From NCBI GenBank assembly GCA_002269645.1, contig NIVC01000696.1, positions 186,001-250,000 on the forward strand: 64,000 nt of DNA, read 5' to 3'. Of this stretch, positions 3,812-63,374 are shown piece by piece. The position numbers and the translations under genes are program-made. The DNA comes from Macrostomum lignano. Taxonomy: Eukaryota. The notes under the pieces were generated by a model. The model was not told the DNA's origin. It ran no database searches and saw nothing but the letters and a program-made list of their open reading frames with translations. Every line of letters begins with the position of its first letter. Position 1 is the stretch's first letter.

Positions 3812-4330
3812 GTTATCTCTACCTATAAAAATCAAAACTCTGTCTGTCTGTCTGTGGACAAATTACTTCGCTATGGACTCCCAAACCGCTCAACCAAATT
3901 ACACCAAACTTTACACCCACCCTAAACTTACTACGGAGAATGTCTTAGGCTACCTTTTAATTTCCTAAATTTGAGTCTTCCTACCTAAAAGTGCAAAAAA
4001 CTGCTCAAAATGCGCAATTTTTTCACTAAATCCTCCATAGCGCCGCTCCACTTCTACCGATTCTCTTCAAATTTGACACAGATAATCTTAAACTATTTTG
4101 GCACAATCATGTAAAATTTCGAGTCTGAAAGTTAATCCTAAACGGCGCTGTGCACTTTTAAAGTTTGGCTGTTTTTTTCAGCGAGGCAGCCACCCCAACC
4201 TCCGCCCGCCTGCCTCTCTTTCCCGATCTGGGCAAAGGGTGTGAGTAGGTTTTGAAATGCCTAACTTTCGGCTGCCATAGTTTTGCTCCACGTGAAGCGA
4301 TTGACTTCAAATTTGACACAATTCTTTATT
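3812..4330 (+). mobile_element. Non-autonomous Helitron/HINE-like (Lep1/DINE-1 type) fragment
   Basis: Begins atctctacctataaaaatcaaaac, then (TGTC)n, then aaaccgctcaaccaaattacaccaaacttt. This is the typical 5' layout of such elements. No clear 3' CTAG end. Confidence 0.45.
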
Positions 4331-5049
4331 GACTCATTCTCTGCCTACATGTAAAGTCTCAACTCTGTATCTCAATCAGGACAGAAACTGTGAGCATGTG
4401 AATTTTGTCTGCTTTTTCTGTTGTTTGTGCCTCTCACTCGCTCATTCCCCAGCCCAGACGAAGGGTCAGGCGATAGGACTGAATGTACATAGCAAATGTA
4501 CAGTGTTTTGGAATAACTTTATTTATAGCCTTCTCTGCACCCCGAGAGTGGAGAGGCTACGTTTAGCCATGACGGTTTAGTGAGAAATTCTAACCACTGC
4601 CCTCCCTCTGTATTGGCAAACTCTGCAGCAGTTTAACAGTGGATGGCAATTGGCAAATCGAGGGAATCCAGCATGGTTTGTAAAAGCGAAAGATTTATGA
4701 AAAGGCGATGCGATGCAATGAAATACAACCCTACTAAATTAGGCACACCATTGAAATTTTAAGTTTCTCTTAAAAGTACTTTGAAATTTAAATGGCCTAA
4801 GAAATGCATATTTCATTGGTTGTTAGACTGATGCAGACTGCAGTGGAGCTGAAGATACACAAATTCCTTTCAGGGCTGCAAATTGGCAAGAAAGATGACG
4901 TGATCAAAGCATGAGAATAACGATGAGAGTAGTACGTCCCACAAACTGGCTTTCGAAGCAGGGATCGGCAGACTTTTACTTCAAAAGCCAGATAAAGAAT
5001 CCAGCTTATGTGCGGGCCAGATGAGAGTGGAAAGGAAGGAATAGACTAT

Positions 5050-6830
<1,781 letters not shown>

Positions 6831-7436
6831 GATCCAAGGGACGTAGGGAGAGTCAGGGAGAGACCAGAGTTTAGCAATATATGTTTTAGAGTCAGACAGA
6901 CATTGCCTGACATTCTGCGCAGTACCCCAGCCAACAATGTCTCAAACCCTAATTTTACACGAATGTGCTCCATTTTATGTCTACCTCTATCCTACTAACT
7001 ATTAACAAGTTTTTGTTTGTGTATGGCCTTAGATTTCAGAATACATGCAAAAATAGTTCCGGGGATTGGAATTCCCCGGGTTCAAAATCCGCGGGTTTCA
7101 ACAGCTTGTCTGATATATACATGCACATGCATGCATGTATACTCAATCAATAGCGGCACATGTGCTAATCAGTGCTTTAGAGTTCGGACGACCTCAAGGC
7201 TATATAATTAAAGCGGCTAGAATTATATCGTGATCGCATTTTGCTGATACAGTATACATATCACTTCATCTTTAGACCATGCAGCTTGACTTACTTTGAC
7301 TTAGCTGCAGGGCTGTCCCAGGACGGACACAGAGGGAAGGCGCAAACGCCCATTCCGCTAATCCCTGAACGGCCGACGCATCGCTATAGACGAAGGGTTG
7401 GCGCCGCCCAGGGAGGTCCCCCAGTGTCGCCAGCAG

Positions 7437-10400
7437 CTATATAGTGCTCTCTGGAAAGGAGAGTTCAGCCCTGCGGGTGGCCCATAGGTATCGCATGAGC
7501 TGATTAAAGTTTTCGAGTTTGCACGCTTCAGTAATAGGTGTGTGTGGCCCGAGGTAAGTGAGTCTGGCTCGCGTAAGGCGGGACAGATGCTGACGAAATG
7601 CTCAGCGGTTTCGTCACCTGAGTTACAGAAACTGCAGGTGGCGTTGGTGGCGTTGCCCTGCAGGTACTGGTGCCTAGAGAAGCAGCCGTGACCTGAGAGG
7701 ATCATGGTGGCAGCCCAGATGTCTCTGCGCGAGAGGCGTAAGAGGAGCTTCCAGAGCTGGTGAGAGGGCTGACAGCGCCTCTGGATTGCCTGCAGGTAGT
7801 GCAGTTCGCCCAAGTCGAGCGGTGCTGGATCCTGATCCACGCTTTGATGCGCGAGTCGATGACACAGCCAGGAATCGGGACAAGGGGTTCGGGACCGAGA
7901 GAGGAGCCGGAGGCGCCAACTTTTGCAAAGGGCGTCAGCCAACATTCCCTCGGATTCCCACTTGCCCCGGAACCCACTTAAGGGTGCTTTTGTTGGTGGA
8001 ACCCAACATGTATGAGTTTGATACAGTCGAGGACTGCTAGCAGAGTTGGTGCTGCAGCCACTGATGGCGTGCAAGGCAGCTTGGCTGTCCGAATGGAGAA
8101 TGATGTTCTTACCGGTTACGCCAGTGGCGAGGAGCTCTGCAGGGCAGGAGCTAATGGCTAGAACTTCATTTTGGAAGACACTGCAGGAGTTGACCCCAGT
8201 GTACTGAGAGTGGGTTGCGATGACCCTCCCGTTCAGGTAGAGCTGGGCCAGGATGGCTGAGGCACGCTTGGCTTTTGCTTTCACGTGGAAAGACCAGTTG
8301 AGCCGGTGGTCGAGTATGACCCCAAGACATCTGGTCTGGTGCGCGAAGGCAATATCTTTGCGGTATAACTGCAGAGGTCGTATGCTCCAGCGTATTCTGC
8401 TGGTGAACATAATGGCAACAGTTTTGGGCTCAGAGAGTTCCAGACCGTTGTCATTGGCCCAGGATTCTGCTTTGCGGATAAAGCTCTGCATCAGATCCCT
8501 GAGCGTGCTGGGAGACGGTCCTGTCACAATGGCAGTGACGTCGTCAGCATACCCGACTTTGAAGACGGGATCAGGTCGGGAGTCGCCCAGAAGAGCGTCC
8601 ATGACCAGGTTCCAGAGCGTCGGGGTGAGGACTCCGCCTTGGGGTCCACCCTTACAGACTCTGGTGGAGGCAGTTTGCCCAAGAAGTTGGGCAGTGACCG
8701 TACGGTTGGAGATCATGTACATGATCCACCGTATGAGGGTAGCATGAGCTTTGCGATTTTGAAGGGCCCTCTGAAACGCTTCAAAGATAACGTTGTCGAA
8801 GGCGCCAACAATGTCAAGAAAGAGAGCCAGAGCGTAACCGTCACCCAGTACCGCCCTTTCAATCTTCTCGACAATCGCATGCAGGGCGCTGTCAGTCGAC
8901 CTCCCGGTACGGAAGGCGTGCTGATTATTGCTGAGGGGCATCGCTGTCAGCTCGCAGGACAGCAGCCGCCAGAGAATAAGCCTCTCAGTGAGCTTAAGGA
9001 TTGCTGACGTTAAGCTAATAGGCCGGAAGGCCTTGACGCTTTGGTAGTCTTCCTTCCCAGGTTTGGGAATAAAGACTACCCGAGCTTCAGTCCAGCATTT
9101 GGGAACGTATCCCAGCTGGATAGAGGCCCGCATAAGATTGCGGGTGAGTCTCAGGAACGAGGGTATCTTGGCTGCTTCACGAAGGAGAACAGGGTAGATA
9201 CCATCAGGTCCAGGAGATTTGAAGGGTTTGAAGGTTCTGACCGCACGAGCGATTAGGTCTTCAGTGACAATGCCCGCCGCTAGGGTGGCTCCATCCATCG
9301 AATGGTTGGGCTCCGGTCTAGCAGTAGGTACCCTCGGGAAGAATGTGCTGAGCATATGCTGAAGCACTTCTTCAGGGTCTTTAGTAAGAGAGCCATCATC
9401 TTTTTTGATCATGGCTAATTTGGACATTTTGTCCATTGTAAGGGCCTTGACAAGCCTAGAAGTAGGTCTGTCTTGATCCAATTCATTGCAGAATTGGCGC
9501 CACTTACATTCCTTGGCCTTGCGCACTTCAGATTTGAAATTGCGGGAGGCTTGCCGGAAAAGCTCCATGTCCTCCGGGTTTCCGGTCTTCATGGCCCGGC
9601 GGTGAAGGATTTTGGCCTTCCGCCTGAGTTTCCCCAGCTCCGGGTTCCACCACGGCGCCGAGGTCTTGCCTTTGTAGGCACGGACAGGGCAGGCCGCTTC
9701 ATAGGCTACAGTAATGCAACCTGTCAGCGTCTCAGCTGCATGGTCCACATCCTTAGCCTTGTAGGCCGCCCAATCAGTGTTGCAGATGTTACGCCTCCAA
9801 GTCACGAGGACTGGGGTTTAGTGTCCGCGATGTTAAAGGCGATAAAGCAGTGGTCAGACAGGGAGGGCTCCTCAGACCAGACTCTCCACTCCTCAACTCT
9901 ATCGAAGAGTCTTGGGGTAACGAGTGTGGCATCGAGGACCTCAGTCCATCTGCCATTGTTCAAGGTAGGAGTGCTACCGCGGTTGCAGAGCATGAGGTTT
10001 GTGTTAGAGATGAGGGCCAGAAGCTCCTCCCCTCTAATATTGGTGTCTTTGCTGCCCTAGTGCTTATGGTGCGCGTTGAGGTCGCCCCCTAAGCACAGCT
10101 CAGCGTTCTGGGACTCGCAGTACTGCGTAAGGCGCAGTAGACTCTCAGGTGCAGGATCTCTGTCGCCTGGAATATAAATCGAAGCAACGAGACACGTCCG
10201 CGAAGAGAGATGATTAGATTGGATGATACAGAGGTCTCCATCTGAGAGATCAGTCCTCAGCCAAGCCTGAAGATGGCTGGCAGCGAGGATAGCCGCTCTA
10301 GGGCGGCTGTTCCCCGGGCCACACACGAAAATCAGAGTAGCCAGAAGGAATGTTGAGCAACTTACCGTTGCGCATCCAGGGTTCCTGGATCAGGATGAGG

Positions 10401-10513: not shown

Positions 10514-12071
10514 ACTGTATTAAATGCAAAAACTGGCAAGAACCCCGGGCCATCAAGGAGACTTGGACAGCAAATCGTCCTCGTCCCAAGCCGTTGGGGC
10601 TTGACTGGGAGATGGGAGTTGGTCGATGTCCATGGCCTCCTCACCCCCACCAGCCCCCCCCCCCCAGCAGAATCCTCGGGCTCCGATGATAGGATGGAGG
10701 AAGCTTCCTCACCTGCATCTTTGCCTTCAGACCCCACCAGGGTGGCTGAGGAGAGCTCGGATTCCGAAGACCCGGCCTCGTCCTCAACTCCTTCTCCGAC
10801 TGGCAGGTTCGGTTCCCGGGGCTTGGCCGGAGCCGTCACCTCGGTCGACGAATTGCTGCTAGCAGAGGGGCGAGACGCAGCTCCGGCTTTGGGATCGGCT
10901 TTCGCCTTTCCTTGGGCCTTAGACTGCGCCCCGCTCTTGCCGGAGATGCCGGGGTTGGCAGAAGCCTTCCCTTTGGCAGACTTTCCTCGGCGCATCTTGA
11001 GCTTGAGGGCACCCAGCTGGAAAGAGGATCCGTTAGGGTACCGACTCGCTCAAGTGTTGGAGAGGCCTAGGACAATTGATTTACCCATCTCCCCGCCTGC
11101 GGACATTGCGGTGATACACCAGTCCACTAGCAGGGAGGTCGGGATTCAGGCGCAGTAGGACCCGGCGAATAACGTCTGGTCCAGCTGCAGTGCTCTTTGC
11201 AGGGACAAAAACCACATAGGGTATTGTCTTTGGACGCTGGCCTTCGCGAAGAAAAAGAGCTCCGCCAAGGTCAGCATCCAAGGAGACCGTCGGCAGCGGC
11301 TGGAGCAGCTGCTGAGTGTCCTCCTCACTGCTAGGAGCAATAAGAACGAATGTGCTTCGCAGCATCATCCGCTCAATGCCGATGGAGATTCCCTCCTCGA
11401 CAGTCAGCTCAATCAGATAGGAGTCAATAGCACTTCCACACTTTTTGAAGCTGACCAGTGGTCCAGTCCTGGTTGCGACCTTGAATGATCACTCCCGGGA
11501 TTTTGGCCTTGGCCTTCGCCGCAAAGGTAGCTCCCGAAGGAACCTCCTTGTTGGCAGTGGCCATTTGTTGCGCCGTGGTTTCGGCCTCTGCAGCCGCAGC
11601 AGCATCTCCAGGGAGCGCCGCCGCTGAACTACCGGAGCTTCCACCGGCCGGCCCGTCTGGTTGCCTTGGGACGCCAGTCGCTTCAGCATCCATGGTGGAC
11701 GCCGCCGCATTGGCCCCTGCAGCTCCCTTCTTGGCCTGCCTTTTGGCGCGTTGCTTAGCGCGTTTGCGCTTTAGCCGAGCCCGCTGAGCTTTGTCGGATC
11801 TGCCAGATTTGGCCGGTCCTTTAGGCTCAGAGCCCGCGGTTCCCTTTGATCCACCAGCAGAGCTGCTAGGTCTTTGGGTACTTTGATTTTGGTAGCTTTG
11901 GTCAGATCTGCCAGCAAGGCCGGCCGGTCCTTCGGACTGAGGTTGAGGTTTAGAAGGGTCCCCGTCCCTAGAAATAGAAATAGGGTTTTTATCCATAGTC
12001 GGCTCGAAGGCCATGATAAAGGTTTTGATGGCTACCCTCGAAGGGGCGCGGTACCCACCCGGCCGCTCCAA
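10510..12071 (-). pseudogene. LINE ORF1 (low-complexity basic N-terminus plus DUF4780-like domain), disrupted
   Basis: ORF pieces 11424..12071, 11081..11368 and 10510..10995 join across frameshifts. The segment RVLLRLNPDLPASG...SIVLGL...FQLG resembles the ORF1 domain of LOA/R1-type elements. Confidence 0.65.
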
Positions 12072-13050
12072 CTGACCGGGCAGTAGGCCAAAAGAACCCT
12101 CAAGGCTGGCCCGACACCAGGAGGGGGACCGCTTGCGACCGGACTACTCCCCGGCCTTCCAGCCCATCGGCACGGTCGAACACGTTAGGCATTAGAGGGT
12201 ACGTTATACGCATTAGAGCCAGACCCGCATACCCAAGTTCAGCAAAAGCCACTGGATGGGTCCCCAGCGCCGGAGCCCAGTCAGTCCGGCAGCCCTAGGG
12301 TCTGACTTGAACACTCGCGGGGACGGGTACCCCTGGGTCGGCTTGCGAAACAGCGTGGGAGGGGGTCTGCGGCTGCCAGCGGCAAATAGAGGGTGCAGAC
12401 CTCCCTCCAGCCTTTACCTGCTGGAGATAGGGGCAGACGTGGAGCATCGCAGACCTTAGCCCATAGGCCTGGTCTGTCTCATACTTCACTGGCATGCTGA
12501 ATACGCCCGTGCGAGCCATTAGACCAGCACTAATGTACAAAGTAAGGAAGTAGAATTACATGTACATATAGCCCTATGCTTCGTCAATAACTCTCTGCTT
12601 CAGTATTTCACAACTTGGCAGACCGCAACTTTGCATCATTTGGTATATTTATTCTGCAGCCCCTTTTCGGTATGGCACCAAAATGCACAGAAATGGATCT
12701 TGCAGAAACCGAAATGGGAATTCGTCGGTCAGCTGATCCCATCGAAAGCAACTGGAGAGTTCCAGTGAGGGTTTCCTAATCTTAGACCCACCCGAAAAGC
12801 ACGTGATTTTGGCATCTATGTAGATTCAGATGTTGGTACCAGCTTGCACATGCAGCCAATTCCGACCCAATTAAGAAATTCCTTGGTTGCTAGGCTTCTT
12901 GCTTCTAGGAGGTTATATAAGCAAGTAATCAGCGGAAGCCGGTAGGAATCAGCTACCATCAGATATGTGAAAAAGCAATCTGCAGAAGCCACACAAAGCC
13001 TTCAATATCTTGCGAGAAGAAACTAATACTTTTCTAATAAAGAAGCCAAA

Positions 13051-14685
13051 ATGTTTGCAATCAAGTTGCTGCTGCTGCTCATCCTGACAACACTGTTGTT
13101 GCCAACAGAAACTGCTGCGGCATTGACGGACTCAGCCACGCCGGTGCATCAAGTGTCCGTATCGATCAGCAGCACCCGTTCTATTGTGTACCACGGAATG
13201 CAAGTGCCAATGTTTCAAAACGCCGGAAACAGCAGCAGCGAATCAAGGCGCTACTTTTTTCCACCGCTCGCTCTGTTGGATTGCAGCTCTTTGCTGGTCA
13301 TCAATCCAGACAATAGCGCCACCGTCCGCGCCAAGGATTCGGAAGTTTCCAATACTACTGAGCGGCCATTTGAAAGCGGCACTATGCTGCGACTATCGAT
13401 ACTGCTGTGGACTGACGAGTTCCTGTCCGCGGCGACAGACCAGCTCACTCCGCCTCCAGATGCTAGGTTTGATGACGCACCAGCTCATGTAGAGCTGATG
13501 CCGCTGACTGAGTTGACGCTGAATTGGTCAGCTCAAGCCCATCATTGGCTTGGGGAGGACTTTGGGCAGAGGTTCCGTCTTAGCTACGGCTGGCAGGATG
13601 CGCAGAGGCCGCTGGCGCGAGTTAATTTTACGGTGTCGTGTAAAAACTTGGATGATTGCCGATTTTTAATGGCACAACTGGGAGACACGGACGGCTCAGC
13701 TGGGCAAATCTTTGACCTAAAGTACCGCATTCGTTGCAACACCCAGCGGCGCCTCTCAGTAACTTTGGCAAGCCGACACCTGCTACGTTCGCCACTGTTT
13801 ACTCAGCTGAACTGGCTCGCACTCAAGTCGTCGGGTGTAGTTCTGGCTTCGGAAGCCGCGATCGACCAGCTGGCTGGGGAACTGCGCCGTGCTGCGCTTG
13901 ATGAGCTGCAGGAGCAGCAAACCGGAGAGCAGCGAGCTGATAGCATCAACTCGGAGGCGCTCGGAGCTCTGCTTGCGGATGCCGAACTTCTATTGCGTCG
14001 TTCGCCCGTCAGAGGAGCTAGTTTGACTCAGTGGGCCGATCAAGTCTTCTGGCAGCCGCCGCACAACAGTCGAGGATTGACTGACAGCCCAACCAGTGGA
14101 GCCCTCCGTCCAGACATGCTGGCCAAACTTTTCAACATGCTGTTCACAGCCGAAGTTGGAGGACTGCCCGGGCACGTTCGTCCTGCAAGCGACTCTGTCA
14201 CATTGCTGACAAGGCTGGCTGATGATGGCGAGCTGCCAGCAGGTGCGGTTGCTCCACTCCGCGAGTTCCTCGCCTCTTACAATCGCCCTGGAGCTGAGGC
14301 GATACCCGTCGACGCTGCTTGCGAACTAGCAACGTCACTTGGAAGCGCGGTCTCGTGGAATGCCGCTAGCGTACGTTTCGTGCCGTCGCCGAATGTGCAG
14401 CTGTACCAGCTGGACACTCGACGGCTGCTGGGTGCTGGAACCTTCGCTATGCGCGACGTTGTTCTCCACTACCGAGTTTCTGAGCAGCGGGACCATGTAG
14501 TGCCGCTCTGTCGGGCTGTGCACGGCTCCGCTGACTACACAAAGCTCACTTGGGAAGCGCAAGCAAAAATAATGCGCATGCGCTATTTGGAATTGTTGCG
14601 TCGAGCGAATAGCGCATCCACCGAGCTGCAACGCATGGCCACCGTTATGGCCAGCTCTCGAGCCGATACGGGCCCGTCCTCGTCG
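13051..14685 (+). CDS. Secreted protein of an uncharacterised family, exon 1
   Basis: Long open frame with signal peptide MFAIKLLLLLILTTLLLPTETAA. Best phase-0 donor TCG|GTCTGT at 14685/14686; exact donor uncertain, and the unspliced ORF stops at 14739. Confidence 0.75.
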
Positions 14686-15121
14686 GTCTGTGACGTATTA
14701 TTGAACCTGCTTTCCATTGAAGCTTTCACAATGGAATAGCCTTGAAAACGGCCGTGGGGTCAATTCAAATTTGTAAAAATAGTCAATTTAGGCTGTATAA
14801 ACGGCAGGAATTGTGTAGGATTTTCAAGATATAAGTTGTGACCGATCTTAGCGCTGGAAAGTTTGTCAATAGGGGATGTCAACTGTTGCTACAAAATGAA
14901 GCCCGAAGCAAAGCTCAGCAGATTGCTGACGACTGCAATCAATATCTTGAATTTCCCGAGACATCCAATCCTTGTGCTCCTGCAGTTTTTAAACTGCAGC
15001 TAAACTTGACATCCTCTTTGGTCCATTGTGCTTGTAGTCGACCTTCTATTGCTTTGCCGTTCTGTTCTGTCATGCGTTCTCATTACGGAAAATGGGTAAT
15101 TAAATTATTTCCACTTTGTAG

Positions 15122-15484
15122 GTGCGCTACCGATCAGCTGACGACTCGTCAGAGCTGTACCCGGGAGCTGATGCAGGCTCAATCGATGGCCTGTGGTCGA
15201 AGCTTCAGTCTCTGTCCAATACGGTCAATCGGTCAATCGATGCCGTCAAATCTGCGTGGCAGTCTCACTTTGCTAATTCCTTCTGCGTATTGGCCAACTC
15301 GGGGCCACCGCCGAGAGGCATGAGCTGCCGCACCATTTCATTCGTGATCCCGAAGAAGTCGCTTCGAAAGGGACGATTTCTAAATCGGCAAGTCCGGGTC
15401 GGCACGGGCACTGCGGGGCAGAACCTGTTCGAGCCGATTGGGGGCGACTTTTACCGCTTCCAGCTGCGCGGCTGCTGCCAGTGA
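15122..15484 (+). CDS. Secreted protein, probable terminal exon with a small Cys-containing C-terminal domain
   Basis: Acceptor tttccactttgtag| at 15121, phase 0. Reads VRYRSADD...SFCVLANSGPPPRGM...FQLRGCCQ*. Confidence 0.65.
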   Translation: MRYRSADDSSELYPGADAGSIDGLWSKLQSLSNTVNRSIDAVKSAWQSHFANSFCVLANSGPPPRGMSCRTISFVIPKKSLRKGRFLNRQVRVGTGTAGQNLFEPIGGDFYRFQLRGCCQ

Positions 15485-16441
15485 GCCCAGCCGGGGGTTC
15501 GAGACCGCGAGTTGACAAAATACGGTTTTAACTGCTCTCAGCCCAGTGAATTCTTATGATAAATCTGTTGTTGCTTTGCTAGCCTGTAGTGTGCATGCGT
15601 GAGCTACTTCTGACTATTCAAGAAATACTACTTCAAATAGCTAATAAAAAGACGCTATTCGAGCACCTAATATTCGGCTTAAAGTCGCAACCGAGCTGTC
15701 ACAACGACATGAACTCAATTAGTCGCTACAATAGCGATTTTTGCTTCAATTTGATAGCCTTAATGATGCTTCTAAGCCAGGCGAATTGAGGAATAAATAC
15801 CATTGATTCAGATCGAAAGATGGCGGAACGATTCAAGGTTTCATGATTCAAAGCTGTCTTGTACGTTTCAATAACATCCATTTAGATTTTTTTCAAATAA
15901 GATTTCAGTTGAGCCTAAAGAATCATGATTAGCTCAAGCCCTGCTGCTTCCCTGACCGTAGAGACCGGCACACCTATACTTCACAGAGTCAGTTGAGCAA
16001 TCATTGGGCTAAGCTTGCAATGACAGGACATAGCTTGTTGTTAAAGTCTGTCATTAAGCTGGCCGTCTACACAGGTAGTACATGTAAGCTGACTACGTAA
16101 CATTTTTAGATTAGCTACTCAGAGCTGGGGGCTATTTTCGCTGCTGCAACATGGCATCTCCAAGCAGAGGAAGGCCGCAACAATGTCGGCGCCGGACTTC
16201 CGAACCTGTCAAACCAATAAAGTCTCACGAAAGCTTCTTTAAGGAAGAGCTTATTCAACTCAAATTATTTAGTCTTTATTAACTGACATCCATTTTCAGG
16301 TTTTGAATGTCACAGTACGTTTGTAGTTTATATATTAGTTTTTAAGTTGGTGCTCTACTGTGACAAAGCCCAACATCGAATGCTAAATCTGGGCCCGGTA
16401 AGCAGCCCGACAGCCATAGCAGTTTTATTTCTCCCATCGAC

Positions 16442-16682
16442 TCAGCCAAGAAAGCCCGGGACGTGACGTGAGCCGCGACTGGTAGCACGGATTGAGTCTT
16501 CCTCAAACTGGATGTCAGCCAGATCCAGTTGCTGGCCAAAGATGTCCGTGCCGGGTGTCCGCTTGGCCGGGGCGGCTGGCTGTGCCGAAGGAATCGGGTA
16601 TCGACAACTGCAGGCAGTCTCCAAGGGCGGGAGTCCGCTATGGCAGACACTGAGATCGGAGAGTGCACGGGTTAGAGTGAGT
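16442..16682 (-). CDS. PLAC8-like protein, terminal exon
   Basis: Acceptor acttctcag| at 16683. The phase-2 join gives CFCC-P-LTLTRALSDL. Stop at 16442, AATAAA about 160 bp downstream. Confidence 0.55.
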
Positions 16683-16691
16683 CTGAGAAGT

Positions 16692-17519
<828 letters not shown>

Positions 17520-18009: not shown

Positions 18010-19040
18010 CACTCTCCATATTCTCCGCTGCCATAGACATCACCCTTCATATTCTCCGCTGCCATAGACAGCACTCTCCATATTCTCCGATGCCATAGAC
18101 ATCACCCTTCATATTCTCCGCTGCCATAGACATCACTCTTCATATTCTCCGCTGCCATAGACATCACCCTTCATATTCTCCGCTGCCATAGACAGCACTC
18201 TCCATATTCTCCGATGCCATAGACAGCACTCTCCATATTCTCCGATGCCATAGACAGCACTCTCCATATTCTCCGCTGCCATAGACAGCTCTCTCCATAT
18301 TCTCCGCTGCCATAGACAGCACTCTCCATATTCTCCGCTGCCATAGACATCACTCTCCATATTCTCCGCTGCCATAGACAGCACTCTCCATATTCTCCGA
18401 TGCCATAGACAGCACTCTCCATATTCTCCGATGCCATAGACAGCACTCTCCATATTCTCCGATGCCATAGACAGCACTCTCCATATTCTCCGATGCCATA
18501 GACAGCACTCTCCATATTCTCCGCTGCCATAGACAGCTCTCTCCATATTCTCCGCTGCCATAGACAGCTCTCTCCATATTCTCCGCTGCCATAGACAGCA
18601 CTCTCCATATTCTCCGCTGCCATAGACAGCTCTCTCCATATTCTCCGCTGCCATAGACATCACTCTCCATATTCTCCGCTGCCATAGACAGCACTCTCCA
18701 TATTCTCTGCTGCCATAGACATCACTCTCCATATTCTCCGCTGCCATAGACAGCACTCTCCATATTCTCCGATGCCATAGACAGCACTCTCCATATTCTC
18801 CGATGCCATAGACAGCACTCTCCATATTCTCCGATGCCATAGACAGCACTCTCCATATTCTCCGATGCCATAGACAGCACTCTCCATATTCTCCGCTGCC
18901 ATAGACAGCTCTCTCCATATTCTCCGCTGCCATAGACAGCACTCTCCATATTCTCCGCTGCCATAGACAGCTCTCTCCATATTCTCCGCTGCCATAGACA
19001 TCACTCTCCATATTCTCCGCTGCCATAGACAGCGCTCTCC
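18010..19040. repeat. 31-bp minisatellite (gagagtgctgtctatggcagcggagaatatg on -), about 33 copies
   Basis: 31-bp period. It explains ORFs 18133..19095 and neighbours. The - strand end of the array runs into a GTGAGT donor. Confidence 0.93.
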
Positions 19041-19499: not shown

Positions 19500-19825
19500 T
19501 TCTAGACAAGATATCGAATACATCGAAGCATCAAGGCATTAAAGCATCAATAAATTATATCATCGAGGCATCCAAGCATCAAATCATCAAGGCATCAAGG
19601 CATCAAAGCAATAAAGTACTAAAAAATCAAGGCAACAAGGTATCAAGGCCTCATGGCATTTAAACATCAAGTAATTATAGCATCAAGGCATCCAAGCATC
19701 AAAACATCAAATCATCAAATCATCAAGGCATTAAGGCATCATAGGATCAAAGCATCAAATCATCAAAGCATCAAATCATCAAAGCATCAAAGCATCAAAT
19801 CACCAAGTCATCAAAGCATCAAGGC
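19500..19825. repeat. Degenerate catcaa(g/a) repeat immediately 3' of the MCTP stop
   Basis: Repeated gcatcaa/catcaag words. Confidence 0.8.
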
Positions 19826-21423
19826 GGAGGCAGAGGCTTCGTTCGCTCCAAATCTACATCGGACGGCACCCGGGACAGCAGATTGAGCAGCTCGTTGCTG
19901 TCATCGGCGCCAGGCCGGAGCAGCTTCTTGCTGAACTTGTTGACGCCCCAGGCCAGCGCCAGCAGCCGCAGCGGCAGCAGGCCGAGGGCCAGCGAGGCGG
20001 CTGCGAGCAGCGCGACGGCCAGGCAGGAGATGCGGGGCTCCCGCCACCCAGCCAGATTGCGCAGCCGCTCAGCGCTGGAGGCCGCAACATCCAGGCCGTC
20101 TTGAAGTCGCAGCAGCAGATCCTGAGCGGCTCTGGCTCGCTGCAACCAGGACAGGTCATCGGTGTCCGCTTCATCATCCACTCCTGCCGCGGCAGCCGAT
20201 TCGTCTACCGAAAAGTCGGCTTTGCCACCGCTGGGATCGACTGCAGTTTGCACCATCGGCCTGTCCTCAGCCGGCTGGCAGAGCCGGGCCAGCCAGTTGA
20301 GGAGAAGCAGAGCCAGGGGAGCCAGCGGCAGCATGAAGGGCTGCAGGTTCCACACAATGGCAACGTAGCTGGCCAGGGCAGCGGCGCTCCGGGCCGGGTC
20401 CTCCCACTGGAAGCAGCTGTTGGCGAAGGCGCCAACCCGGGCGGTGGTCTCGATGAAGGCGGCGCACCGTCGGGCGTCTCGGCGCACCAGGCGGAGCCTC
20501 AGCTTCGCCTCCGGCCGATCGCGCAGTTGCGGCTGCCGCGGCCCGATGGCACGCACGGCGACGCCGATCCAGCTGTACCGAAGCCGCGTCTCCAGCCTGA
20601 GCCGGCCGCCCGTCCAGGCCTCCAGACGCTTGTCCTTCAGGCCGTGCCAGCTCGACCGGCTGCCGCGAGCATCGGCGCCATCCAGCAGCTGCGGCAGGCG
20701 GAGCGCCAACCGGCCCAGCAGAACCGGCTGCTGCTGCTGCCGCTTGGCCTCCTCAAAGACGGCCACCTGCAGCTCGGAGTGGAGGTCGCGCACGCGAAAT
20801 CTCAGCTCCCGACTGCGGCCGCTGGTCTCAGCCAGTCGGGCGCTGAGCTGCGAGTTGCCCAGCCGCACCGTGCAGAATGCGCCAGCGGCCGAGTTCGCGC
20901 CAGCTCCGGGCTTCAGCAGCTCCACCGCTGCCACGCGAACTCCGAGGCAGCCGATGGCACCGTCGCCCCCGAAGTCATCGTCGAAGTCGTATTCGTCTTT
21001 GTCGCCCCCTGCGTCGGCAAGGCTCGGCAGCAAATCGAGGGTCAGCCGAACTGCCGGCCCGCCAGCCGGATGGTCCAACAGCGGCGCCACGATGAGGTCG
21101 CCGCCCCATCGCGACTCGGCTGGCAGCAGCGGGACTCGCGCTCGGCCCAGCAGGATGTCCTGGCTGGTGAGGTGGCGCTCGTACACTGCCACGTCAAGCT
21201 GGCGATGCCTGGCCGAAAGCGGCAGCGGCATGCGCAGGTCCTCGTCCCAGCCGTGGCCGCGGTGGGCGAGGCGGCTGCGGCAAATCTGTTCGCCCAGCTG
21301 CAGCTGAGCATAGAGCGGGCGATTCGACAGCGTCGAGTCATCGGCCAAGTCTGGCCCGCAGCTACTGCTGCTGGTGGTGGTCAGGCCGACAATGTCGATG
21401 AGGCCGACATTGACTATGGACTC
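19819..21423 (-). CDS. MCTP: MCTP exon 3 (C2B, C2C, transmembrane/PRT_C region)
   Basis: Acceptor ccaattcag|GAG. Contains LDVAVYERH..QDILLGR, FRVRDLHSELQVAVF, FANSCFQWE, RLRNLAGWREPRISCLA, LAWGVNKFSKKL and LLSRVPSD, all typical of MCTP. Confidence 0.9.
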   Translation of the reverse strand, partial: ESIVNVGLIDIVGLTTTSSSSCGPDLADDSTLSNRPLYAQLQLGEQICRSRLAHRGHGWDEDLRMPLPLSARHRQLDVAVYERHLTSQDILLGRARVPLLPAESRWGGDLIVAPLLDHPAGGPAVRLTLDLLPSLADAGGDKDEYDFDDDFGGDGAIGCLGVRVAAVELLKPGAGANSAAGAFCTVRLGNSQLSARLAETSGRSRELRFRVRDLHSELQVAVFEEAKRQQQQPVLLGRLALRLPQLLDGADARGSRSSWHGLKDKRLEAWTGGRLRLETRLRYSWIGVAVRAIGPRQPQLRDRPEAKLRLRLVRRDARRCAAFIETTARVGAFANSCFQWEDPARSAAALASYVAIVWNLQPFMLPLAPLALLLLNWLARLCQPAEDRPMVQTAVDPSGGKADFSVDESAAAAGVDDEADTDDLSWLQRARAAQDLLLRLQDGLDVAASSAERLRNLAGWREPRISCLAVALLAAASLALGLLPLRLLALAWGVNKFSKKLLRPGADDSNELLNLLSRVPSDVDLERTKPLPPP

Positions 21424-21783
21424 CTGAATTGGCGCAAATGGGGAGGGGCGTTTCGGGTGCGGAGCTGTAACCGGGTTCCATTCCAGGTCTCTGGCCATAT
21501 AGTCAAGGACTAAATGTGTTTAGATTACGCAGATAAAATTTTGGGGAAAAATGTCTATAAAGAATCGAAACTACTTGTAGTAGTGTCGCCCTTGATTCGA
21601 AAATCGCAGATTTATACTAGTTAAAGTAGAGCTAGTCTGAAGTCTGTCTCGTCAGTTGCCTCCCGTGAATTGAGATTGGGGGAGGGGGGCACTGACCTCC
21701 CGACATTTAAGATTAATGCATAGAGTGCTTCAGGGTGTACAGTGGCTGCAGCTGAGCACCTGACGACTACTCCAGCTACCAAC

Positions 21784-28999: not shown

Positions 29000-30170
29000 A
29001 TCTGGGATTAGGCACGGGGCAGTTGGGATATCCGAAATGGGTCAAAAATGGTTGGGATAGCTGGAATGGGTCATAGATGGTTGGGATAGCTGGAATGGGT
29101 CATAGATGGTTGGGATAGCTGGAATGGGTCATAGATGGTTGGGATAGCTGGAATGGGTCATAGATGGTTGGGATAGCTGGAATGGGTCATAGATGGTTGG
29201 GATAGCTGGAATGGGTCATAGATGGTTGGGATATTTGGAATGGGTCATAGATGGTTGGGATATTTGGAATGGGTCATAGATGGTTGGGATATTTGGAATG
29301 GGTCATAGATGGTTAGATTATCTGGATTGGGTCATAGATGGTTAGATTATCTGGATTGGGTCATAGATGGTTGGGATTTCTGCATGGGTCATAGATGGTT
29401 AGATTATCTGGATTGGGTCATAGATGGTTAGATTATCTGGATTGGGTCATAGATGGTTGGGATTTCTGCATTGGTCAAGGAGTGGTTGGGATAGCTGGAA
29501 TGGGTCATAGATGGTTAGATTATCTGGATTGGGTCATAGATGGTTAGATTATCTGGATTGGGTCATAGATGGTTAGATTATCTGGATTGGGTCATAGATG
29601 GTTGGGATTTCTGCATGGGTCATAGATGGTTAGATTATCTGGATTGGGTCATAGATGGTTAGATTATCTGGATTGGGTCATAGATGGTTGGGATTTCTGC
29701 ATTGGTCAAGGAGTGGTTGGGATAGCTGGAATGGGTCATAGATGGTTAGATTATCTGGATTGGGTCATAGATGGTTAGATTATCTGGATTGGGTCATAGA
29801 TGGTTGGGATTTCTGCATTGGTCAAGGAGTGGTTGGGATAGCTGGAATGGGTCATAGATGGTTAGATTATCTGGATTGGGTCATAGATGGTTAGATTATC
29901 TGGATTGGGTCATAGATGGTTGGGATTTCTGCATTGGTCAAGGAGTGGTTGGGATAGCTGGAATGGGTCATAGATGGTTAGATTATCTGGATTGGGTCAT
30001 AGATGGTTAGATTATCTGGATTGGGTCATAGATGGTTAGATTATCTGGATTGGGTCATAGATGGTTAGATTATCTGGATTGGGTCATAGATGGTTAGATT
30101 ATCTGGATTGGGTCATAGATGGTTAGATTATCTGGATTGGGTCACAGATGGTTGGGATTTCTGCATGGGT
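29000..30170. repeat. 29-bp minisatellite (gggtcatagatggttgggatagctggaat), about 40 copies in variant blocks
   Basis: 29-bp period; variants tagctggaat, tatttggaat, agattatctggatt and tttctgca. Confidence 0.93.
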
Positions 30171-30715
30171 CAAGGAGTGATTGGGATATGGAATGGGACA
30201 TGAAGTGGCTAACTTCACGATGTGGGTCATAGAAATCTAGCCAAAAATCCTAGAATACATCACAGCCAAACCACAAAAAACGAACAATGGAGCTTTCCTA
30301 GCCAAAAAAGAATTGTTTAAACGCGCACCGTTTGTTGTCATTAAAGTTTCTTGTTTGCATTCAAAGTTGACTTAAAAAATGAAAATCAAATGCTAGTTAT
30401 TACGCCGGTACAACGAGAGACATACAGAAAGAGAGAGAACAAAGGTAGATCAGGGAGATTTCGACTTACATATATAGTATTTGGGCCTTACAATCAAATA
30501 CATAAGGGGAAATGGCAAAATTAAAAAAATAACAGACGCGAATAATGAATGAATGAGACTGATAGGCAGAATACTTGGACACGCAAGTTGAGAAGCTTGT
30601 TGAAACAACACTACTTATCGCGCATTTCTAATAAGTAGTATAAATATAACATGTACGAGTATAATAAATATATGCACATAGAAATTGCTCTTAATTTCTC
30701 TTATCCATGCGACAG

Positions 30716-41720: not shown

Positions 41721-43679
41721 TCACTGGAACGGCACCAAGCAGTACACTAAATCGGAGTTAAGCAGCCGGAATTCGGCTGGCGGGTTCGTGACAACTACCC
41801 GCTTCGTGGTCTGCGGCTCGCCCATATTGTAGCTGTCCCTGTACCGGTAGACACCGAAGCAGAGAATACCGTGCGATTTCAGAACGCCAGTGAACAGCTC
41901 GCCGTAGGTTAACTGGCCGTAGGGGCGCAGCCTGGCGTCCAACATCGACAGCTGCATGATGCGGCAACGGTTTCTGTTGGCCTCAATCTCTGGAGTAGCC
42001 TCCGTACCGTCCATGCTGAGGCCTTCCGCCATGAGCACCTCCATCTCTGGCGTTGCACCACCGGTCACCAGAGTTCGAATGAGGGTCATGGCGTTCATGT
42101 TGTAGAACACTGTGGACATGAGCGAATCCAGGACGTCAGTAGTGAACGCGTTGCCGCAGGCGTACGGCTGAGAGTTGTAGATTTCCTCCTCGTCCGAGTC
42201 GTTGTCGTCTTGGTCTAAGAATTGGATGTTTTTTCCCACGAAAATTTCGGTGAGAATCGGCACGGCGACCTTGGACATCATGGATTTCGCCTGGGCGTCC
42301 TTGCTCTGAAATGCCTGCATCTGGGCTTGAACGCTTGTATCCAGTTCGTCGGCAAATGACATCGCCTTAATGTTGAGAGTGCACAGCACGACCTCCTTGT
42401 CCATTAGGTAGGGATCCATTTGCTCTTTCCACTTGGACTTGGCGCTCATAATGACGCACATGTCGCAAAGGTTGATCTTGGCGCTGCGCAGGATGACGCG
42501 GTTCATGGGCGAGCCGGGGAACATGTACAACTTCGGGAAGTTCTTTAACGACTGCCACTCTTTCTGTAAGAACTCCAAATTTCCAATAAACACAATAGGT
42601 TTCAGCTCTCTCAGATGAAAGTTGCTGGCCTCAGCGGCATGACAAAACTGCGTAGACCGATGAGGTGCGAGTCGCTGTCCGCAAACACAATCACTATGTA
42701 GTGCTCGCGCAGATTCAGCCGAGCAGCACTACCGGGTTTCAGCATTACATCCTCGAAGTTCCGTTCGGGACACCAATGAAACATGCCTGTTAGGTCGAAG
42801 TATTCAGTCGACTGCTTGCTTGGGTCGTCGCCGGAGTACTCGCCGTACCGCTGCTGCTCGTCAGCCCCAAACTCCGTCTCTTGCACCGCGGCCAGCACCT
42901 TCTTCCGTGAGGCAACCTGAATTTCGGGTCGGCGAACATTTGCGCTGTTGCCTCTCAGACGTGTCACCTCATGCGCACCGTCGTGACCCGGCGATTCCGG
43001 GCCGCTGACCTCCGTCTGGCAGCTGCATTTCCGAATTTGGCGGGGATCGGCCAAGTCCCGGTGGCACCTGTTGCAGTACAGGTAGGCCCTTCGAACCTCC
43101 TCTTGAGAGTCAGCAACAAAAAATCCATGACAGCCGTTGTAAATAATGGCGGATCTGCCTGGGGGGTTGATTGAAAGGAAGCGGTCTCCTTCGCTGTTCT
43201 TGGCTTCGATGGCGAATAGAATCACCCGCAGCTTGTTGTAGCAGAGCATCACCGCCTCCTGGAAGGTCATTCCCACGAAGGAGTCGCTAAAGTACTCGGA
43301 GTAAATCTCCATGGCGCTGCCATCCTGATAGTCCTTCTCCCAGCTGCCAATAAGATGCGAGTCGCTCATGGCCCTCGTGGAAAACAGGTTTGCCATCAGG
43401 GTTGAGAAGCCCGGCGCGAGGCAGCTCTGAGCCAGGAAGCCCTGTTTCATTTCGGCCACGCAGAGACATTCGTCACCAAGCCGCCAATCCCAGTTGGGAA
43501 TGTTCAGCAGATAGCCTTTGTTGTGATACTGCAGCAGCTGAATGATGCATCGAGTCTTCGGGGATACATTCTTGATAGAGATCACCCGCATGATGTTGGA
43601 TGCGTCCTCGGCATCTGGGTCCTCGTCGTACTTGTTGCACAGGATGATGGCGGCCGCTGAGGACTCCAGACAGACTCGC
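41721..43679 (-). CDS. slo1: Slo1/BK-type Ca2+-activated K+ channel, exon 3 (RCK1-RCK2), with a 1-bp frameshift at about 42630
   Basis: ccaactccag|G CGA; EDASNIMRVISIKN, LAQSCLAPGFST, FVMPLR-ASNFHLRELKPIVFIG, Ca-bowl QFLDQDDNDSDEEE, QPYACG, ALTLIRTLVTGG-like segment. The two ORFs overlap at CTGAGGCCAGC (one G missing). Confidence 0.9.
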
Positions 43680-43916
43680 CTGGAGTTGGGTGAAAAACGA
43701 AAATACTGATCAAAGTGATAAACGCTGGAAATGGCTGGATTCGTCTGCGGTTGGAATTCAGCGCGGAAAAGGTTCAATGGATAGGCTAAGTCAATTAGAA
43801 GCATATCTAGGCACCAGATTTAAGACGTGAGCCATATAGTGATCCCAAGTAGATACAGACTGATCACAGGAAACCAAGCAAAAATGCACAGAATCATCAA
43901 GCTATCCCGAACTCAC

Positions 43917-45701: not shown

Positions 45702-45812
45702 ATCAAAGTAAGAAATTTGATGTTAGAATATTTCGAAAATGGAAGCCACGACGCCTCATACACAGACTATTATGGATCCAGAAAAGCAATTCAAGGCTAA
45801 TTCCGGACTCAC

Positions 45813-46619
45813 GTTGACATTCGAGTATTCGTACTGCGGATCACCGGAGTTCTCGCACAGATGCGTGATGCCGGCCCCGATGACCCACACGCTCAGGAAA
45901 GTGGTGACCATCTGGAAGAAGCGGATCACCGTGCCGGACTTCAGCACGCTCAGGTACTGCAGCACGTCGGGCAGGGTCATGATGCGAAGGCAGCGAATGA
46001 ATCGCAGGCCCAGCCAAGACTGGTTCAGGTAGATGTTAACGAAGGCGGGCGGCACTGTGCAGTAGTCCACGATGGAGTAGATCTCCAGCCAGAACCAGAG
46101 CTTGTCCTGGGCGGCCAGAAATCGGATGCAGAAATAGATTAAAAAGACAATATTGAAGGCCAGGTCCACCTGGTTGAGCACGCTCTGAGACCAAGGGACG
46201 CAGTTCTCTACAAAGCCGACTAGAAAGGTGGCCTCGTAGATGTAGATGCCGAGAGACGACACGCTCAGGCTGAAGATGAGCACAACCAGAATTCTGCCAG
46301 TAATGCTCTGCGCACTGATAAGCTCGTTGGCCCATTCCTTCACCTCGGCTGTCCAGTCGATTCGGTCGCCTTCGATAGTCTGGCCGTTGCCCTTGGCAAC
46401 CATTGCCGCGTCCTTGCCGATCTCAGTGCTGCCGCCCTGACTGCTCCGGCGAATTCGCTTGACCAGCCATCCGACCAGGCGGACAAGCAGGACCAGCAGC
46501 AGGCCGCCGATGAAGGCGATCGCCGTGGACGCCAGGTGAATGTACCACAGGCGGGTGGAGCAGGCTGCTACCACTCCGGATGTCGTGCTTCCGGCAGTTG
46601 AAGCAGGAGTTGTCGCCAT
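45813..46619 (-). CDS. slo1: Slo1/BK-type channel, exon 1 (S0-S5)
   Basis: S0 LASTAIAFIGGLLLVL, EVKEWANELISAQSITGRILVVL, S4 WLGLRFIRCLR, ENSGDP; donor AAC|GTGAGT. Confidence 0.92.
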
Positions 46620-53096: not shown

Positions 53097-53859
53097 AAGC
53101 ATTGACATTTCAGTAATTCTCTCCAAGAGTCATTATAGCACTACTATAGCATTATAGCAATTCCCTGCAAGCCTTGACATTGTAGGAATTCCTAAATAAA
53201 TCTCTTAACTTCAACATGAAGCTTCTTTTATTTTTTACATTATGCTTTTTCTATCAGCAATCCTTCCCCTGAGGAGGCAACAAATAATGTAATAAAAAGT
53301 TTTGAATAAACTACATGTAGCTTCTGACTTTAGCCTTGACATCTCAGCTATTCCTCCCATAAACCTTGAAATCTGAAAAATCCCCTGTTAACCTTAAAAC
53401 CCGCTAAAATCTAACCTTCAACCCAAACCTGACCTAAATCTAACTTTACCCAACCTAAAGCCTTGAAATCTTAGCAATTCTTCTCCCTTAAGCCTTGACA
53501 TTTTTGTGATTACTTCTTTAAGAATCACAGCACTATAACAATTCCCTCCAAGCCTTGACATTATAGCAATTCCCAAATGAATCTTTTAACTTTGACATGA
53601 CTCTTCTTTTATGTATACATAGTGCTTCTTTTCTTTTTTACATGACTTTTTTTCTATCTGCATCCCCTCTCCCCATAGCAAGCCAACAAAGAATGTAATA
53701 AAAAATTAAGTAAACTACATATACTTTGAAGTAGCATCTGACTTTTGCTTTGACATCTCAGAAACCCCCCCCCCCCATAATCTCAGTTATTCTCCGTGAG
53801 CCTTGATATATCAGTAATTCTCCCTAGCACAGCACTATAGCTTCATTTAATTTTTACAT

Positions 53860-55075
53860 GATACTTCTATGATTGTTTGCATGATGCTTCTACAATTGTT
53901 TATATGATGCTTCTATGATTGTTTGCATGACACTTCTATGATTGTTTACATGACACTTCTATGATTTTTTACATGACGCTTCTATGATTATTTACATGAT
54001 GCTTCTATGATTGTTTACATGACACTTCTACAATTGTTTACATGACGCTTCTATGATTGTTTGCATGTCACTTCTATGATTGTTTACATGACACTTCTAT
54101 GATTGTTTACATGACACTTCTATGATTGTTTACATGACGCTTCTATGATTGTTTACATGATGCTTCTATGATTTTTTACATGATGCTTCTATGATTGCTT
54201 ACATGCCGCTTCTATGATTTTTACATGACGCTTCTATGATTCTTTTATGATGCTTCTATAATTTTTTAAATTATGCCACTATGATTTTTTGACACTTCTA
54301 TGATTTTTTACATGACGCCTCTATGATTTTTTACATGACACCACTATTATTTTTACATGACGCCACTATGATTTTTACATGACGCTTCTATGATTGTTTT
54401 CATGACGCTTTTATGATTGTTTACATGACGTTTCTATGATTGTTTGCATGACGCTTCTATGATTGTTTGCATGATGCTTCTATGATTTTTTATATGATGC
54501 CTCTATGATTTTTTGTGATGCTTCTATGATTTTTACATGACACTTCTATGATTTTTTTATGATGCTTCTATGATTGTTTGCATGACGCTTCTATGATTGT
54601 TTTCATGTCGCTTTTATGATTGTTTACATGATGCTTCAATGATTGTTTGCATGACGCTTCTATGATTGTTTGCATGATGCTTCTATGATTTTTTATATGA
54701 TGCCTCTATGATTTTTTGTGATGCTTCTATGATTTTTACATGACGCTTCTATGATTTTTTTATGATGCTTCTATGATTGTTTGCATGACGCTTCTATGAT
54801 TGTTTTCATGTCGCTTTTATGATTGTTTACATGATGCTTCTATGATTGTTTGCATGACGCTTCTATGATTGTTTGCATGATGCTTCTATGATTTTTTATA
54901 TGATGCCTCTATGATTTTTTGTGATGCTTCTATGATTTTTACATGACGCTTCTATGATTTTTTTATGATGCTTCTATGATTGTTTGCATGACGCTTCTAT
55001 GATTGTTTTCATGTCGCTTTTATGATTGTTTACATGATGCTTCTATGATTGTTTGCATGATGCTTCCATGATTGT
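53860..55075. repeat. ~21-bp minisatellite (catgacgcttctatgattgttt) with a ~203-bp higher-order repeat
   Basis: Variant block tatatgatgcctctatg recurs at about 54491, 54694 and 54897. Confidence 0.9.
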
Positions 55076-57555: not shown

Positions 57556-57711
57556 GTGAGTTCTTGTTTCCTACCCAATGTTTTTAGAGTTTGCAAAACA
57601 AAACTTTCTTCTTATTGGTGCACACGTTTTTGTACAAGATAGTGAGTTTTGCCCCATAGCTATATTGTGCATCGCCCCACAGCTACAGCGAGAATAGCTT
57701 GCAGCCCCTTA

Positions 57712-58257
57712 TCACAGTGTCCCTGATCAGCCTCACTCCCCCATCGCAGTGTCCCTGACCAGCTTCATCACTCCCCCATCGCAGTGTCCCTGATCAGCCT
57801 CACTCCCCCATCGCAGTGTCCCTGATCAGCCTCACTCCCCCATCGCAGTGTCCCTGATCAGCCTCACTCCCCCATCGCAGTGTCCCTGATCAGCCTCACC
57901 CCCCATTGCAGTGTCCCTGATCAGCCTCACTCCCCCATCGCAGTGTCCCTGATCAGCTTCATCACTCCCCCATCGCAGTGTCCCTGATCAGCCTCACTCC
58001 CCCATCGCAGTGTCCCTGATCAGCCTCACTCCCCCATCGCAGTGTCCCTGATCAGCCTCACTCCCCCATCGCAGTGTCCCTGATCAGCCCACTCCCCCAT
58101 CGCAGTGTCCCTGATCAGCTTCATCACTCCCCCATCGCAGTGTCCCTGATCAGCTTCATCACTCCCCCATCGCAGTGTCCCTGATCAGCTTCATCACTCC
58201 CCATCGCAGTGTCCCTGATCAGCTTCATCACTCCCCATCGCAGTGTCCCTGATCAGC
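57712..58257. repeat. 32-35-bp minisatellite (cagtgtccctgatcagcctcactcccccatcg), about 16 copies, spanning a splice acceptor
   Basis: Period 32 with 34-35-bp variants; the last copy supplies the acceptor of exon 4. Confidence 0.92.
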
Positions 58258-63207: not shown

Positions 63208-63292
63208 GTTCACTACATGTAAGTCCCTATTATCCCTTAGAAACCGAACGAGCTACGAATCAGCCTTTGATGATTGCTTTCCAATATCTTAC

Positions 63293-63374
63293 CGCAATCC
63301 TTAAACTTGACCGGGTCAGCGAGAACCGCAGCGAAGGCGCAAGCAAGCGCAGCAAACAACAGAGTCAGTTTCAT
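63293..63374 (-). CDS. NPC2: NPC2/ML-domain sterol carrier, exon 1 (signal peptide)
   Basis: MKLTLLFAALACAFAAVLADPVKFKDC-G|gtaaga. The spliced product is 149 aa with the six NPC2 cysteines. Confidence 0.9.

Follow-up and report, generated by a model that had tools for sequence, protein, structure and literature searches.

A two-exon gene, Mlig006920

The stretch of DNA analysed here (the window, 64,000 nucleotides of Macrostomum lignano contig NIVC01000696.1) contains the gene Mlig006920, a real and expressed gene of two exons whose splice model is correct. As called on this contig in GenBank, the gene measures 2434 bases and covers exactly positions 13051-15484 of the window, on the plus strand. 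Its spliced product of 665 amino acids, hereafter P0001, matches along its whole length, with 100% identity, the proteins PAA52814.1 and PAA78274.1 (Macrostomum lignano 'hypothetical protein BOX15_Mlig006920g3/g2'), while a third copy, g1 (PAA73398.1), shows the single difference S178I. The locus is not new, being already in GenBank as a hypothetical protein.

The coding part of exon 1 (13051-14685, plus strand; 545 codons, 1635 nt, phase 0) is delimited by an ATG at 13051, which opens the reading frame, and by a splice donor after 14685 (G|GTCTGT), and is identical to the GenBank coding sequence. It is further supported by homology to the paralogue P0003 (Mlig030455g1) and to the distant relatives P0004 and P0006, as well as by the secondary structure of an AlphaFold model. 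By chance, 545 sense codons would follow one another without a stop with a probability of about (61/64)^545, or about 4e-12. The intron (14686-15121, plus strand; 436 nt, GT..AG, phase 0) has a pyrimidine-rich tract ahead of its acceptor, which lies before 15122 (TTTCCACTTTGTAG|G). The coding part of exon 2 (15122-15484, plus strand; 120 codons and the stop, 363 nt, phase 0) ends in ...LRGCCQ*, and the tail it encodes aligns collinearly with its counterparts in the intronless paralogue P0003, in P0004 and in a related locus, L008.

The GenBank annotation of this assembly was built solely from RNA-seq transcript assemblies (StringTie/TACO/TBONE, with open reading frames, ORFs, from TransDecoder; PMC5730564), so that the junction between the two exons is supported by transcripts through its provenance. 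The first-pass annotation, which had joined 14685 to 15122 in compatible phase and expected about 665 residues, was exact on each point. Read without splicing, the frame continues for 17 further codons past the donor to a stop at 14737-14739, giving 562 codons in all. This unspliced 562-aa product was rejected, as it would lack the cysteine tail that is present in the paralogue, in P0004 and in L008.

Architecture and relatives of the predicted protein

P0001 is read as a secreted protein consisting of a signal peptide, an alpha/beta domain of about 450 residues, two helices with a heptad pattern, and a tail of about 70 residues containing cysteines. Exon 1 encodes the signal peptide (residues ~1-24), the conserved N-terminal domain (~35-490) and the first long helix (501-538), and exon 2 encodes the second long helix (566-596) and the tail (~590-665, with C600, C614, C663 and C664). 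The signal peptide MFAIKLLLLLILTTLLLPTETAAA (13051-13122, plus strand) is predicted, by rule, to be cleaved after the AAA that ends at residue 24, where small residues occupy positions -3 and -1. With a lysine at position 5 in the n-region, a leucine-rich core and AAA at 22-24, the layout of the N-terminus fits a cleavable signal peptide, as had been proposed at first pass. Residues 1-26 form the sole hydrophobic segment of the protein (Kyte-Doolittle > 1.6), and P0001 is thus predicted to combine a cleavable N-terminal signal peptide with no other membrane segment, as befits a secreted protein. P0003, P0004 and P0006 likewise begin with a hydrophobic stretch, and so do the exon-stitched sequences of loci L005 and L008. 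P0001 further holds five N-x-S/T sites and ten cysteines, among which the pair C197/C203 is invariant across the family.

An AlphaFold2 model of P0001, built with a small family alignment, has a mean predicted local distance difference test score (pLDDT) of 66, which rises to 75-92 in blocks within residues 110-490. It displays a beta-rich start (37-118), mixed beta-alpha units, a helix-rich middle and strands at 434-486, followed by the long helices 501-538 and 566-596 and a small beta tail (600-664). In an independent model of P0004 (mean pLDDT 62.5) the elements follow one another in the same order, and long helices at 439-482 and 489-525 match those of P0001. The linker and the tail are the least confident parts of the models. 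In the best register, 8 of 11 a/d positions are hydrophobic in the first helix of P0001 and 7 of 9 in the second. Comparison of six segments of the protein by hhalign revealed no internal repeats, apart from one match where adjacent segments overlap. In the models the N-terminal domain of about 450 residues forms a single compact globule, which is conserved in the family.

Searched exhaustively with phmmer, a set of 1.84 billion representative proteins contained only five matches at E<=1e-3, namely P0001 itself, P0003 (1.3e-76), P0004 (4.7e-5), P0005 (1.8e-4) and P0006 (1.8e-4), a count to be read knowing that the distant relatives, P0004 to P0006, are reached from P0001 only at about 1e-4 and that weaker ones could escape such a search. 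Word-indexed searches with the full protein and with an alignment (A1) recovered the query alone, probably through a candidate cap taken up by unrelated proteins. A profile of the trimmed core alignment added three more fragments, and scanning metagenome contigs with a back-translated pattern revealed nine more eukaryote-like loci. The family loci L005-L016 come from the unannotated eukaryotic assembly GCA_041192925.1, the ENA assembly ERZ25070786 and metagenome contigs of JAAUYM01/JAAUYJ01. From these searches the family appears sparse and scattered in its distribution, in agreement with the patchy occurrence that the first-pass annotation had anticipated. Its suggestion of relatives in Daphnia, bdelloid rotifers, springtails and cnidarians found no confirmation, the phmmer and core-profile searches having returned named proteins from M. 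lignano only.

Stop-free exon fragments matching the family hidden Markov model were present in all 14 loci outside Macrostomum. Ten of them (L005-L014) span at least one intron position common across loci, with exon breaks recurring at profile positions ~52, 106, 159 and 327 and with short introns; these are animal-type genes. Two scans of 185,579 species of bacteria and archaea, each represented by one genome, yielded no relatives, nor did a scan of the viral sequences of IMG/VR. Horizontal transfer from bacteria, for which homologues had been sought on the advice of the earlier reading, was rejected on the strength of the bacterial and archaeal scans.

In M. lignano the family is represented by two loci, Mlig006920 and Mlig030455. 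The latter encodes P0003, a protein of 526 amino acids that is 40% identical to P0001; it is intronless, forming one uninterrupted ORF at positions 4001-5581 of the locus L017 on contig NIVC01000203.1, and its N-terminal domain is fused directly to the cysteine tail, without the helical linker of about 100 residues. P0004 (594 aa) is likewise encoded by a single ORF, on a 64-kb eukaryote-like metagenome contig, and consists of the N-terminal domain, a long helical region and the tail; at L008 some 400 bp separate the exons of the N-terminal domain from the tail downstream of them. The order of N-terminal domain, helices and cysteine tail thus recurs in M. lignano, P0004 and L008.

An alignment of 18 sequences identifies the conserved positions of the family as R67, P72, L76, W120, E148, P151, W159, W181, F193, C197, C203 and Y225, followed by W328, V332, F333, W334, P336, R353, P354, D355, N362, W436, P445 and L451 (P0001 numbering). 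They define a collinear core of R-Y-Y/F-x-x-P-L, L/M-W, V-E-x-L/M-P-L/M and F-x-x-x-C-x5-C, then W-x-S/x-V-F-W-x-P, R-P-D-x6-N and W-x4-7-F-x3-P, which is complete in P0001 and kept by 85% or more of the sequences in the alignment. All of the ordered motifs listed at first pass are present and coincide with these positions, and their order is, as was then supposed, common to uncharacterised homologues elsewhere; some of the spacings had been slightly miscounted and should read C197-x5-C203 and W328-x3-V-F-W334. Judging from the alignment, the invariant residues, mostly Trp, Phe, Pro, Cys and Leu together with R353-P354-D355 and E148, resemble those of a structural core or of a binding face more than those of an active site.

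The cysteine tail and the search for known folds

The C-terminal cysteine module recognised by the first-pass annotation is indeed conserved. The tails of the two M. lignano proteins and of P0004 contain four cysteines each and that of L008 contains six. The latter (WPSGRYCILASGSCPAGFTRASG...IKCHGKCGQYGNWIGDLFIVSCCK*, also given as 'WPSGRYCILASGSCPAGF...SCCK') matches the Pfam family ApeC (PF16977) at E=3.2e-4 with 21 bits, below the curated cut-off of 26.5 bits and over profile positions 73-96 of 208 only. The same profile gave no hit at E<=10 with the full M. lignano protein or with the tails of P0001, P0003 and P0004. Resemblance of the tail to the module of apextrins, which had been described as 'YC-I...CP.GF...CC', is therefore accurate for L008, with its W-P-x-G-x-Y-C-I...C-P-x-G-F motif and CC-K end, and only loose for the FCVLANSGPPPRGMSC...GCCQ of M. 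lignano.

A defined ApeC domain is about 200 residues long and carries eight cysteines and three DXED motifs (PMC9585378, PMC8361754). The segment of P0001 that lies past the second helix extends over about 70 residues (590-665) to the end of the protein, with four conserved cysteines where ApeC has eight, and D-x-E-D occurs in none of the four tails. As it falls short in profile match, length, cysteine count and DXED alike, the P0001-type tail is not classed as an ApeC domain. The cysteine count alone does not exclude a distant kinship, since bacterial ApeC-like domains are reported to keep only four (PMC8361754), and some genuine ApeC-containing proteins (ACPs) have lost the DXED motifs (PMC8361754). 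On sequence grounds the tail may be a distant or minimal relative of ApeC. Like the P0001 family, ACPs and apextrins are secreted by aquatic invertebrates and carry a cysteine-containing module at their very C-terminus, and ACPs are also patchily distributed, without orthologues between phyla (PMC9585378). The two groups differ in the length, cysteine number and DXED motifs of this module, and in the N-terminal domain, which in P0001 is neither MACPF nor any of the domains found by Pfam.

The main domain of the P0001 family is without a match to any known family or solved fold. Pfam gave no family at E<=1 for P0001 and nothing meaningful for six of its relatives, and NCBIfam gave no match for the family. 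Sequences of the PDB yielded zero hits at E<=10, both with P0001 alone and with an 18-sequence profile, and no match to the L008 tail. When the models of P0001 and P0004 were compared by Foldseek with 350,542 PDB chains, nothing was found at E<=1e-3 (best E 0.7 and 0.24), and the top matches of the two models have none in common, being unrelated small alpha/beta or beta-sandwich pieces. A Foldseek comparison with the viral structures of BFVD also gave nothing. The family had been called unnamed from the outset, rightly so, and it and its N-terminal domain are undescribed as far as the searched databases and literature show.

Possible roles of the secreted product

We tentatively propose, at a probability of about 0.3, that P0001 is a secreted, oligomeric protein of the recognition or agglutinin type of an aquatic invertebrate. 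The product of Mlig006920 would enter the secretory pathway and be released as a glycosylated, disulfide-bonded extracellular protein, in which the two long heptad-like helices could bundle or multimerise several chains. The ApeC-like tail might then serve as a module for binding surfaces or glycans, or for disulfide cross-linking, the N-terminal domain would carry the activity specific to the family, and the whole may play a role in defence. The gene model with its transcript-derived annotation, the secretory N-terminus, the order of domains and the conservation of the family are all shown, and no known catalytic or pore-forming signature was detected in P0001. By analogy, such a protein would resemble the secreted ACPs: in the short members of that group the ApeC domain attaches to peptidoglycan and brings about the agglutination of bacteria (PMC9585378, PMC8361754).

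The layout of P0001 would also recall the stalked soluble lectins. Collectins, ficolins/FREPs and C1q-domain proteins similarly possess a multimerising stalk, helical or of collagen, followed by a C-terminal recognition domain, and in P0001 a signal peptide precedes a helical segment of multimerisation type and a small C-terminal globular module, as in the layout of stalked recognition proteins. P0001 differs from them in having no sequence or fold kinship with any of these groups and in having its largest domain at the N-terminus; its oligomerisation is predicted only, and its paralogue has no stalk.

Several observations weigh against this proposal. The link to ApeC consists of one sub-threshold match over 24 profile positions, and in the relative L008, while the tail of M. 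lignano itself shows no ApeC hit and departs from ApeC in length, cysteine count and DXED. Multimerisation through the helical linker is not essential to the family, because P0003 does without it. The AlphaFold models are of moderate quality, as their mean scores indicate. In addition, Mlig006920 goes unmentioned in the main text of the literature searched, and both Mlig006920 and Mlig030455 are absent from the supplements of PMC5816591, PMC7336406, PMC12896417, PMC5946080 and PMC12732829.

A more specific form of the proposal is rather doubtful: that the N-terminal domain is an undescribed extracellular fold of a new, ancient but patchily retained family of proteins secreted by aquatic invertebrates, and that, joined by a helical stalk to a minimal ApeC-like module of four cysteines, it makes the family an innate recognition or effector class of its own, with a tail reduced to the functional minimum of ApeC. 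If true, this reading of P0001 as a recognition protein would extend the secreted recognition proteins known from aquatic invertebrates by a new domain architecture, and a compact four-cysteine version could reveal the essential part of ApeC. The N-terminal domain is large, conserved across distant genomes and testable in a tractable model animal; M. lignano has methods for transgenesis, RNA interference and in situ hybridisation, which open the family to direct testing. Flatworms commonly have orphan secreted families, and should the proposal be wrong, P0001 would be one of many such lineage-restricted proteins. The gains would then be modest, consisting of a confirmed gene model, an automatic 'Vitellogenin domain' name that is apparently unfounded, and no support for a toxin.

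Among the alternatives, a structural secretion is the one that survives best, although we consider it unlikely. P0001 would in that case belong to mucus, eggshell, adhesive or extracellular matrix, with the CC and other cysteines cross-linking chains and the helices aiding assembly. M. lignano is rich in secretory glands, and the predicted signal peptide, the N-x-S/T sites, the C-terminal CC and the long helices would all suit such a role. The sea urchin ApeC protein apextrin has, moreover, been proposed to act in cell adhesion (PMC8361754). Yet P0001 has neither tandem or other internal repeats nor the low-complexity composition typical of structural secretions, its domain of 450 residues is compact, conserved and globular, and the silence of the literature, text and supplements, tells against this role as well.

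A secreted enzyme of novel fold, with R353-P354-D355 and E148 as part of its active site, appears improbable. The best-modelled region does contain a few invariant charged residues, but they are not accompanied by a conserved His, Ser or Cys, or by a second acidic residue, that would complete a recognisable catalytic set, and the conserved positions are mostly aromatic, Pro or Cys, a make-up usual for structural cores and binding faces.

Still a little less credible is a pore-forming toxin or venom-like effector, whose N-terminal domain would insert into membranes while the tail provides targeting, as in apextrin. In its favour are the predicted secretion and the weak ApeC-like motif of the tail, together with the build of apextrins, in which a signal peptide, MACPF and ApeC occur together (PMC9585378). 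P0001 has no such MACPF/perforin domain ahead of its tail: neither MACPF, aerolysin nor any other toxin family was matched in Pfam at E<=1, no relatives were found among PDB sequences, and the top Foldseek matches of the two models are unshared. Since Foldseek gave no hits at E<=1e-3, no MACPF, aerolysin, other pore-forming or lipid-transfer fold was detected. An identity with MACPF proteins or apextrins was accordingly rejected, and the toxin, effector or pore-forming fold envisaged by the first-pass annotation gains nothing from the two models. Nothing marks P0001 as a toxin.

Least probable by our estimate is that P0001 belongs, as a highly divergent member, to the large lipid transfer proteins with an N-terminal domain of the vitellogenin, MTP or apolipophorin type. 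P0001 recalls them in its comparable size, its signal peptide and, in the model, a beta-rich stretch over the first 240 residues followed by a helix-rich one. Against this reading stands the failure of Vitellogenin_N to match in Pfam at E<=1, of PDB sequences to match either P0001 or the family profile, and of Foldseek to find a PDB match at E<=1e-3, the lipid-transfer content of that library not having been separately checked. None of these three approaches revealed the beta-barrel and helical superhelix of lipovitellin or MTP, and an identity with vitellogenin was rejected. The idea has its origin in UniProt, where A0A1I8J1X4 (UniRef100_A0A1I8J1X4) is automatically named 'Vitellogenin domain-containing protein', while the S178I copy, A0A267FI01, is named only 'Uncharacterized protein'. 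None of the comparisons with Pfam, with PDB sequences or by Foldseek bears out the vitellogenin name. The first name was presumably produced by a PROSITE profile, and the discrepancy could reflect a borderline automatic profile hit or different annotation runs. The probability that is left beyond the recognition-type protein and these four alternatives belongs to something else.

Copies and genomic surroundings

The copies of Mlig006920 on NIVC01000696.1 and NIVC01003179.1 (L002) show one synonymous difference in their exons. The identity extends equally to the intron and to some 1.2 kb of the downstream flank, and the comparison of the two copies is consequently uninformative on selection; the other flanks differ by about 2% and by indels (window 13000-16700). 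Such near-identical copies fit a recent duplication, the hidden polyploidy of M. lignano, or gene conversion. Flanking the coding region, a TATA-like element (TATATAA, 12914-12920, plus strand), found by pattern search about 135 nt upstream of the ATG, is a candidate core promoter, and an AATAAA (15643-15648, plus strand) about 160 nt past the stop codon is a putative polyadenylation signal.

The neighbourhood is that of an ordinary animal genome, and nothing suggests a gene cluster or a functional linkage with Mlig006920. Upstream, a 283-aa ORF on the minus strand (896-1747) contains an HATPase_c_3 domain of a GHKL ATPase, possibly MORC-like, and an 815-aa ORF (7358-9805, minus strand) with a reverse transcriptase domain (RVT_1, E=4.5e-28) represents a retrotransposon copy. 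About 1 kb upstream of Mlig006920 and on the opposite strand lies a 215-aa ORF (11424-12071, minus strand) that is rich in K, R, A, G and S and has no Pfam match, and which is a candidate gene. The next annotated gene downstream (19819-21498, minus strand) has a 559-aa ORF with C2 and PRT_C domains, corresponding to an MCTP-like multiple-C2 transmembrane protein. Further downstream, on the same strand, exons of a Slowpoke/BK calcium-activated potassium channel occur at 41721-43804 and 45756-46619 (BK_channel_a, Slo-like_RCK, Slowpoke_C and Ion_trans).

Minisatellite arrays are found at 18010-19040 (31-bp unit, 33 copies), 29022-30201 (29/116-bp, 41/10 copies), 53853-55078 (23/203-bp, 54/6 copies) and 57711-58257 (32-bp, 17 copies). 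A 30-bp unit repeated 40 times at 62014-63212 gives rise to 400-aa ORFs on both strands (62005-63304) that are repeat artefacts and not genes, and a (TAGA)n array at 16693-17518 likewise produces an artefactual 359-aa 'YLSI' ORF. The window holds many micro- and minisatellites, and its long minisatellite arrays fit the repeat-rich genome of M. lignano.

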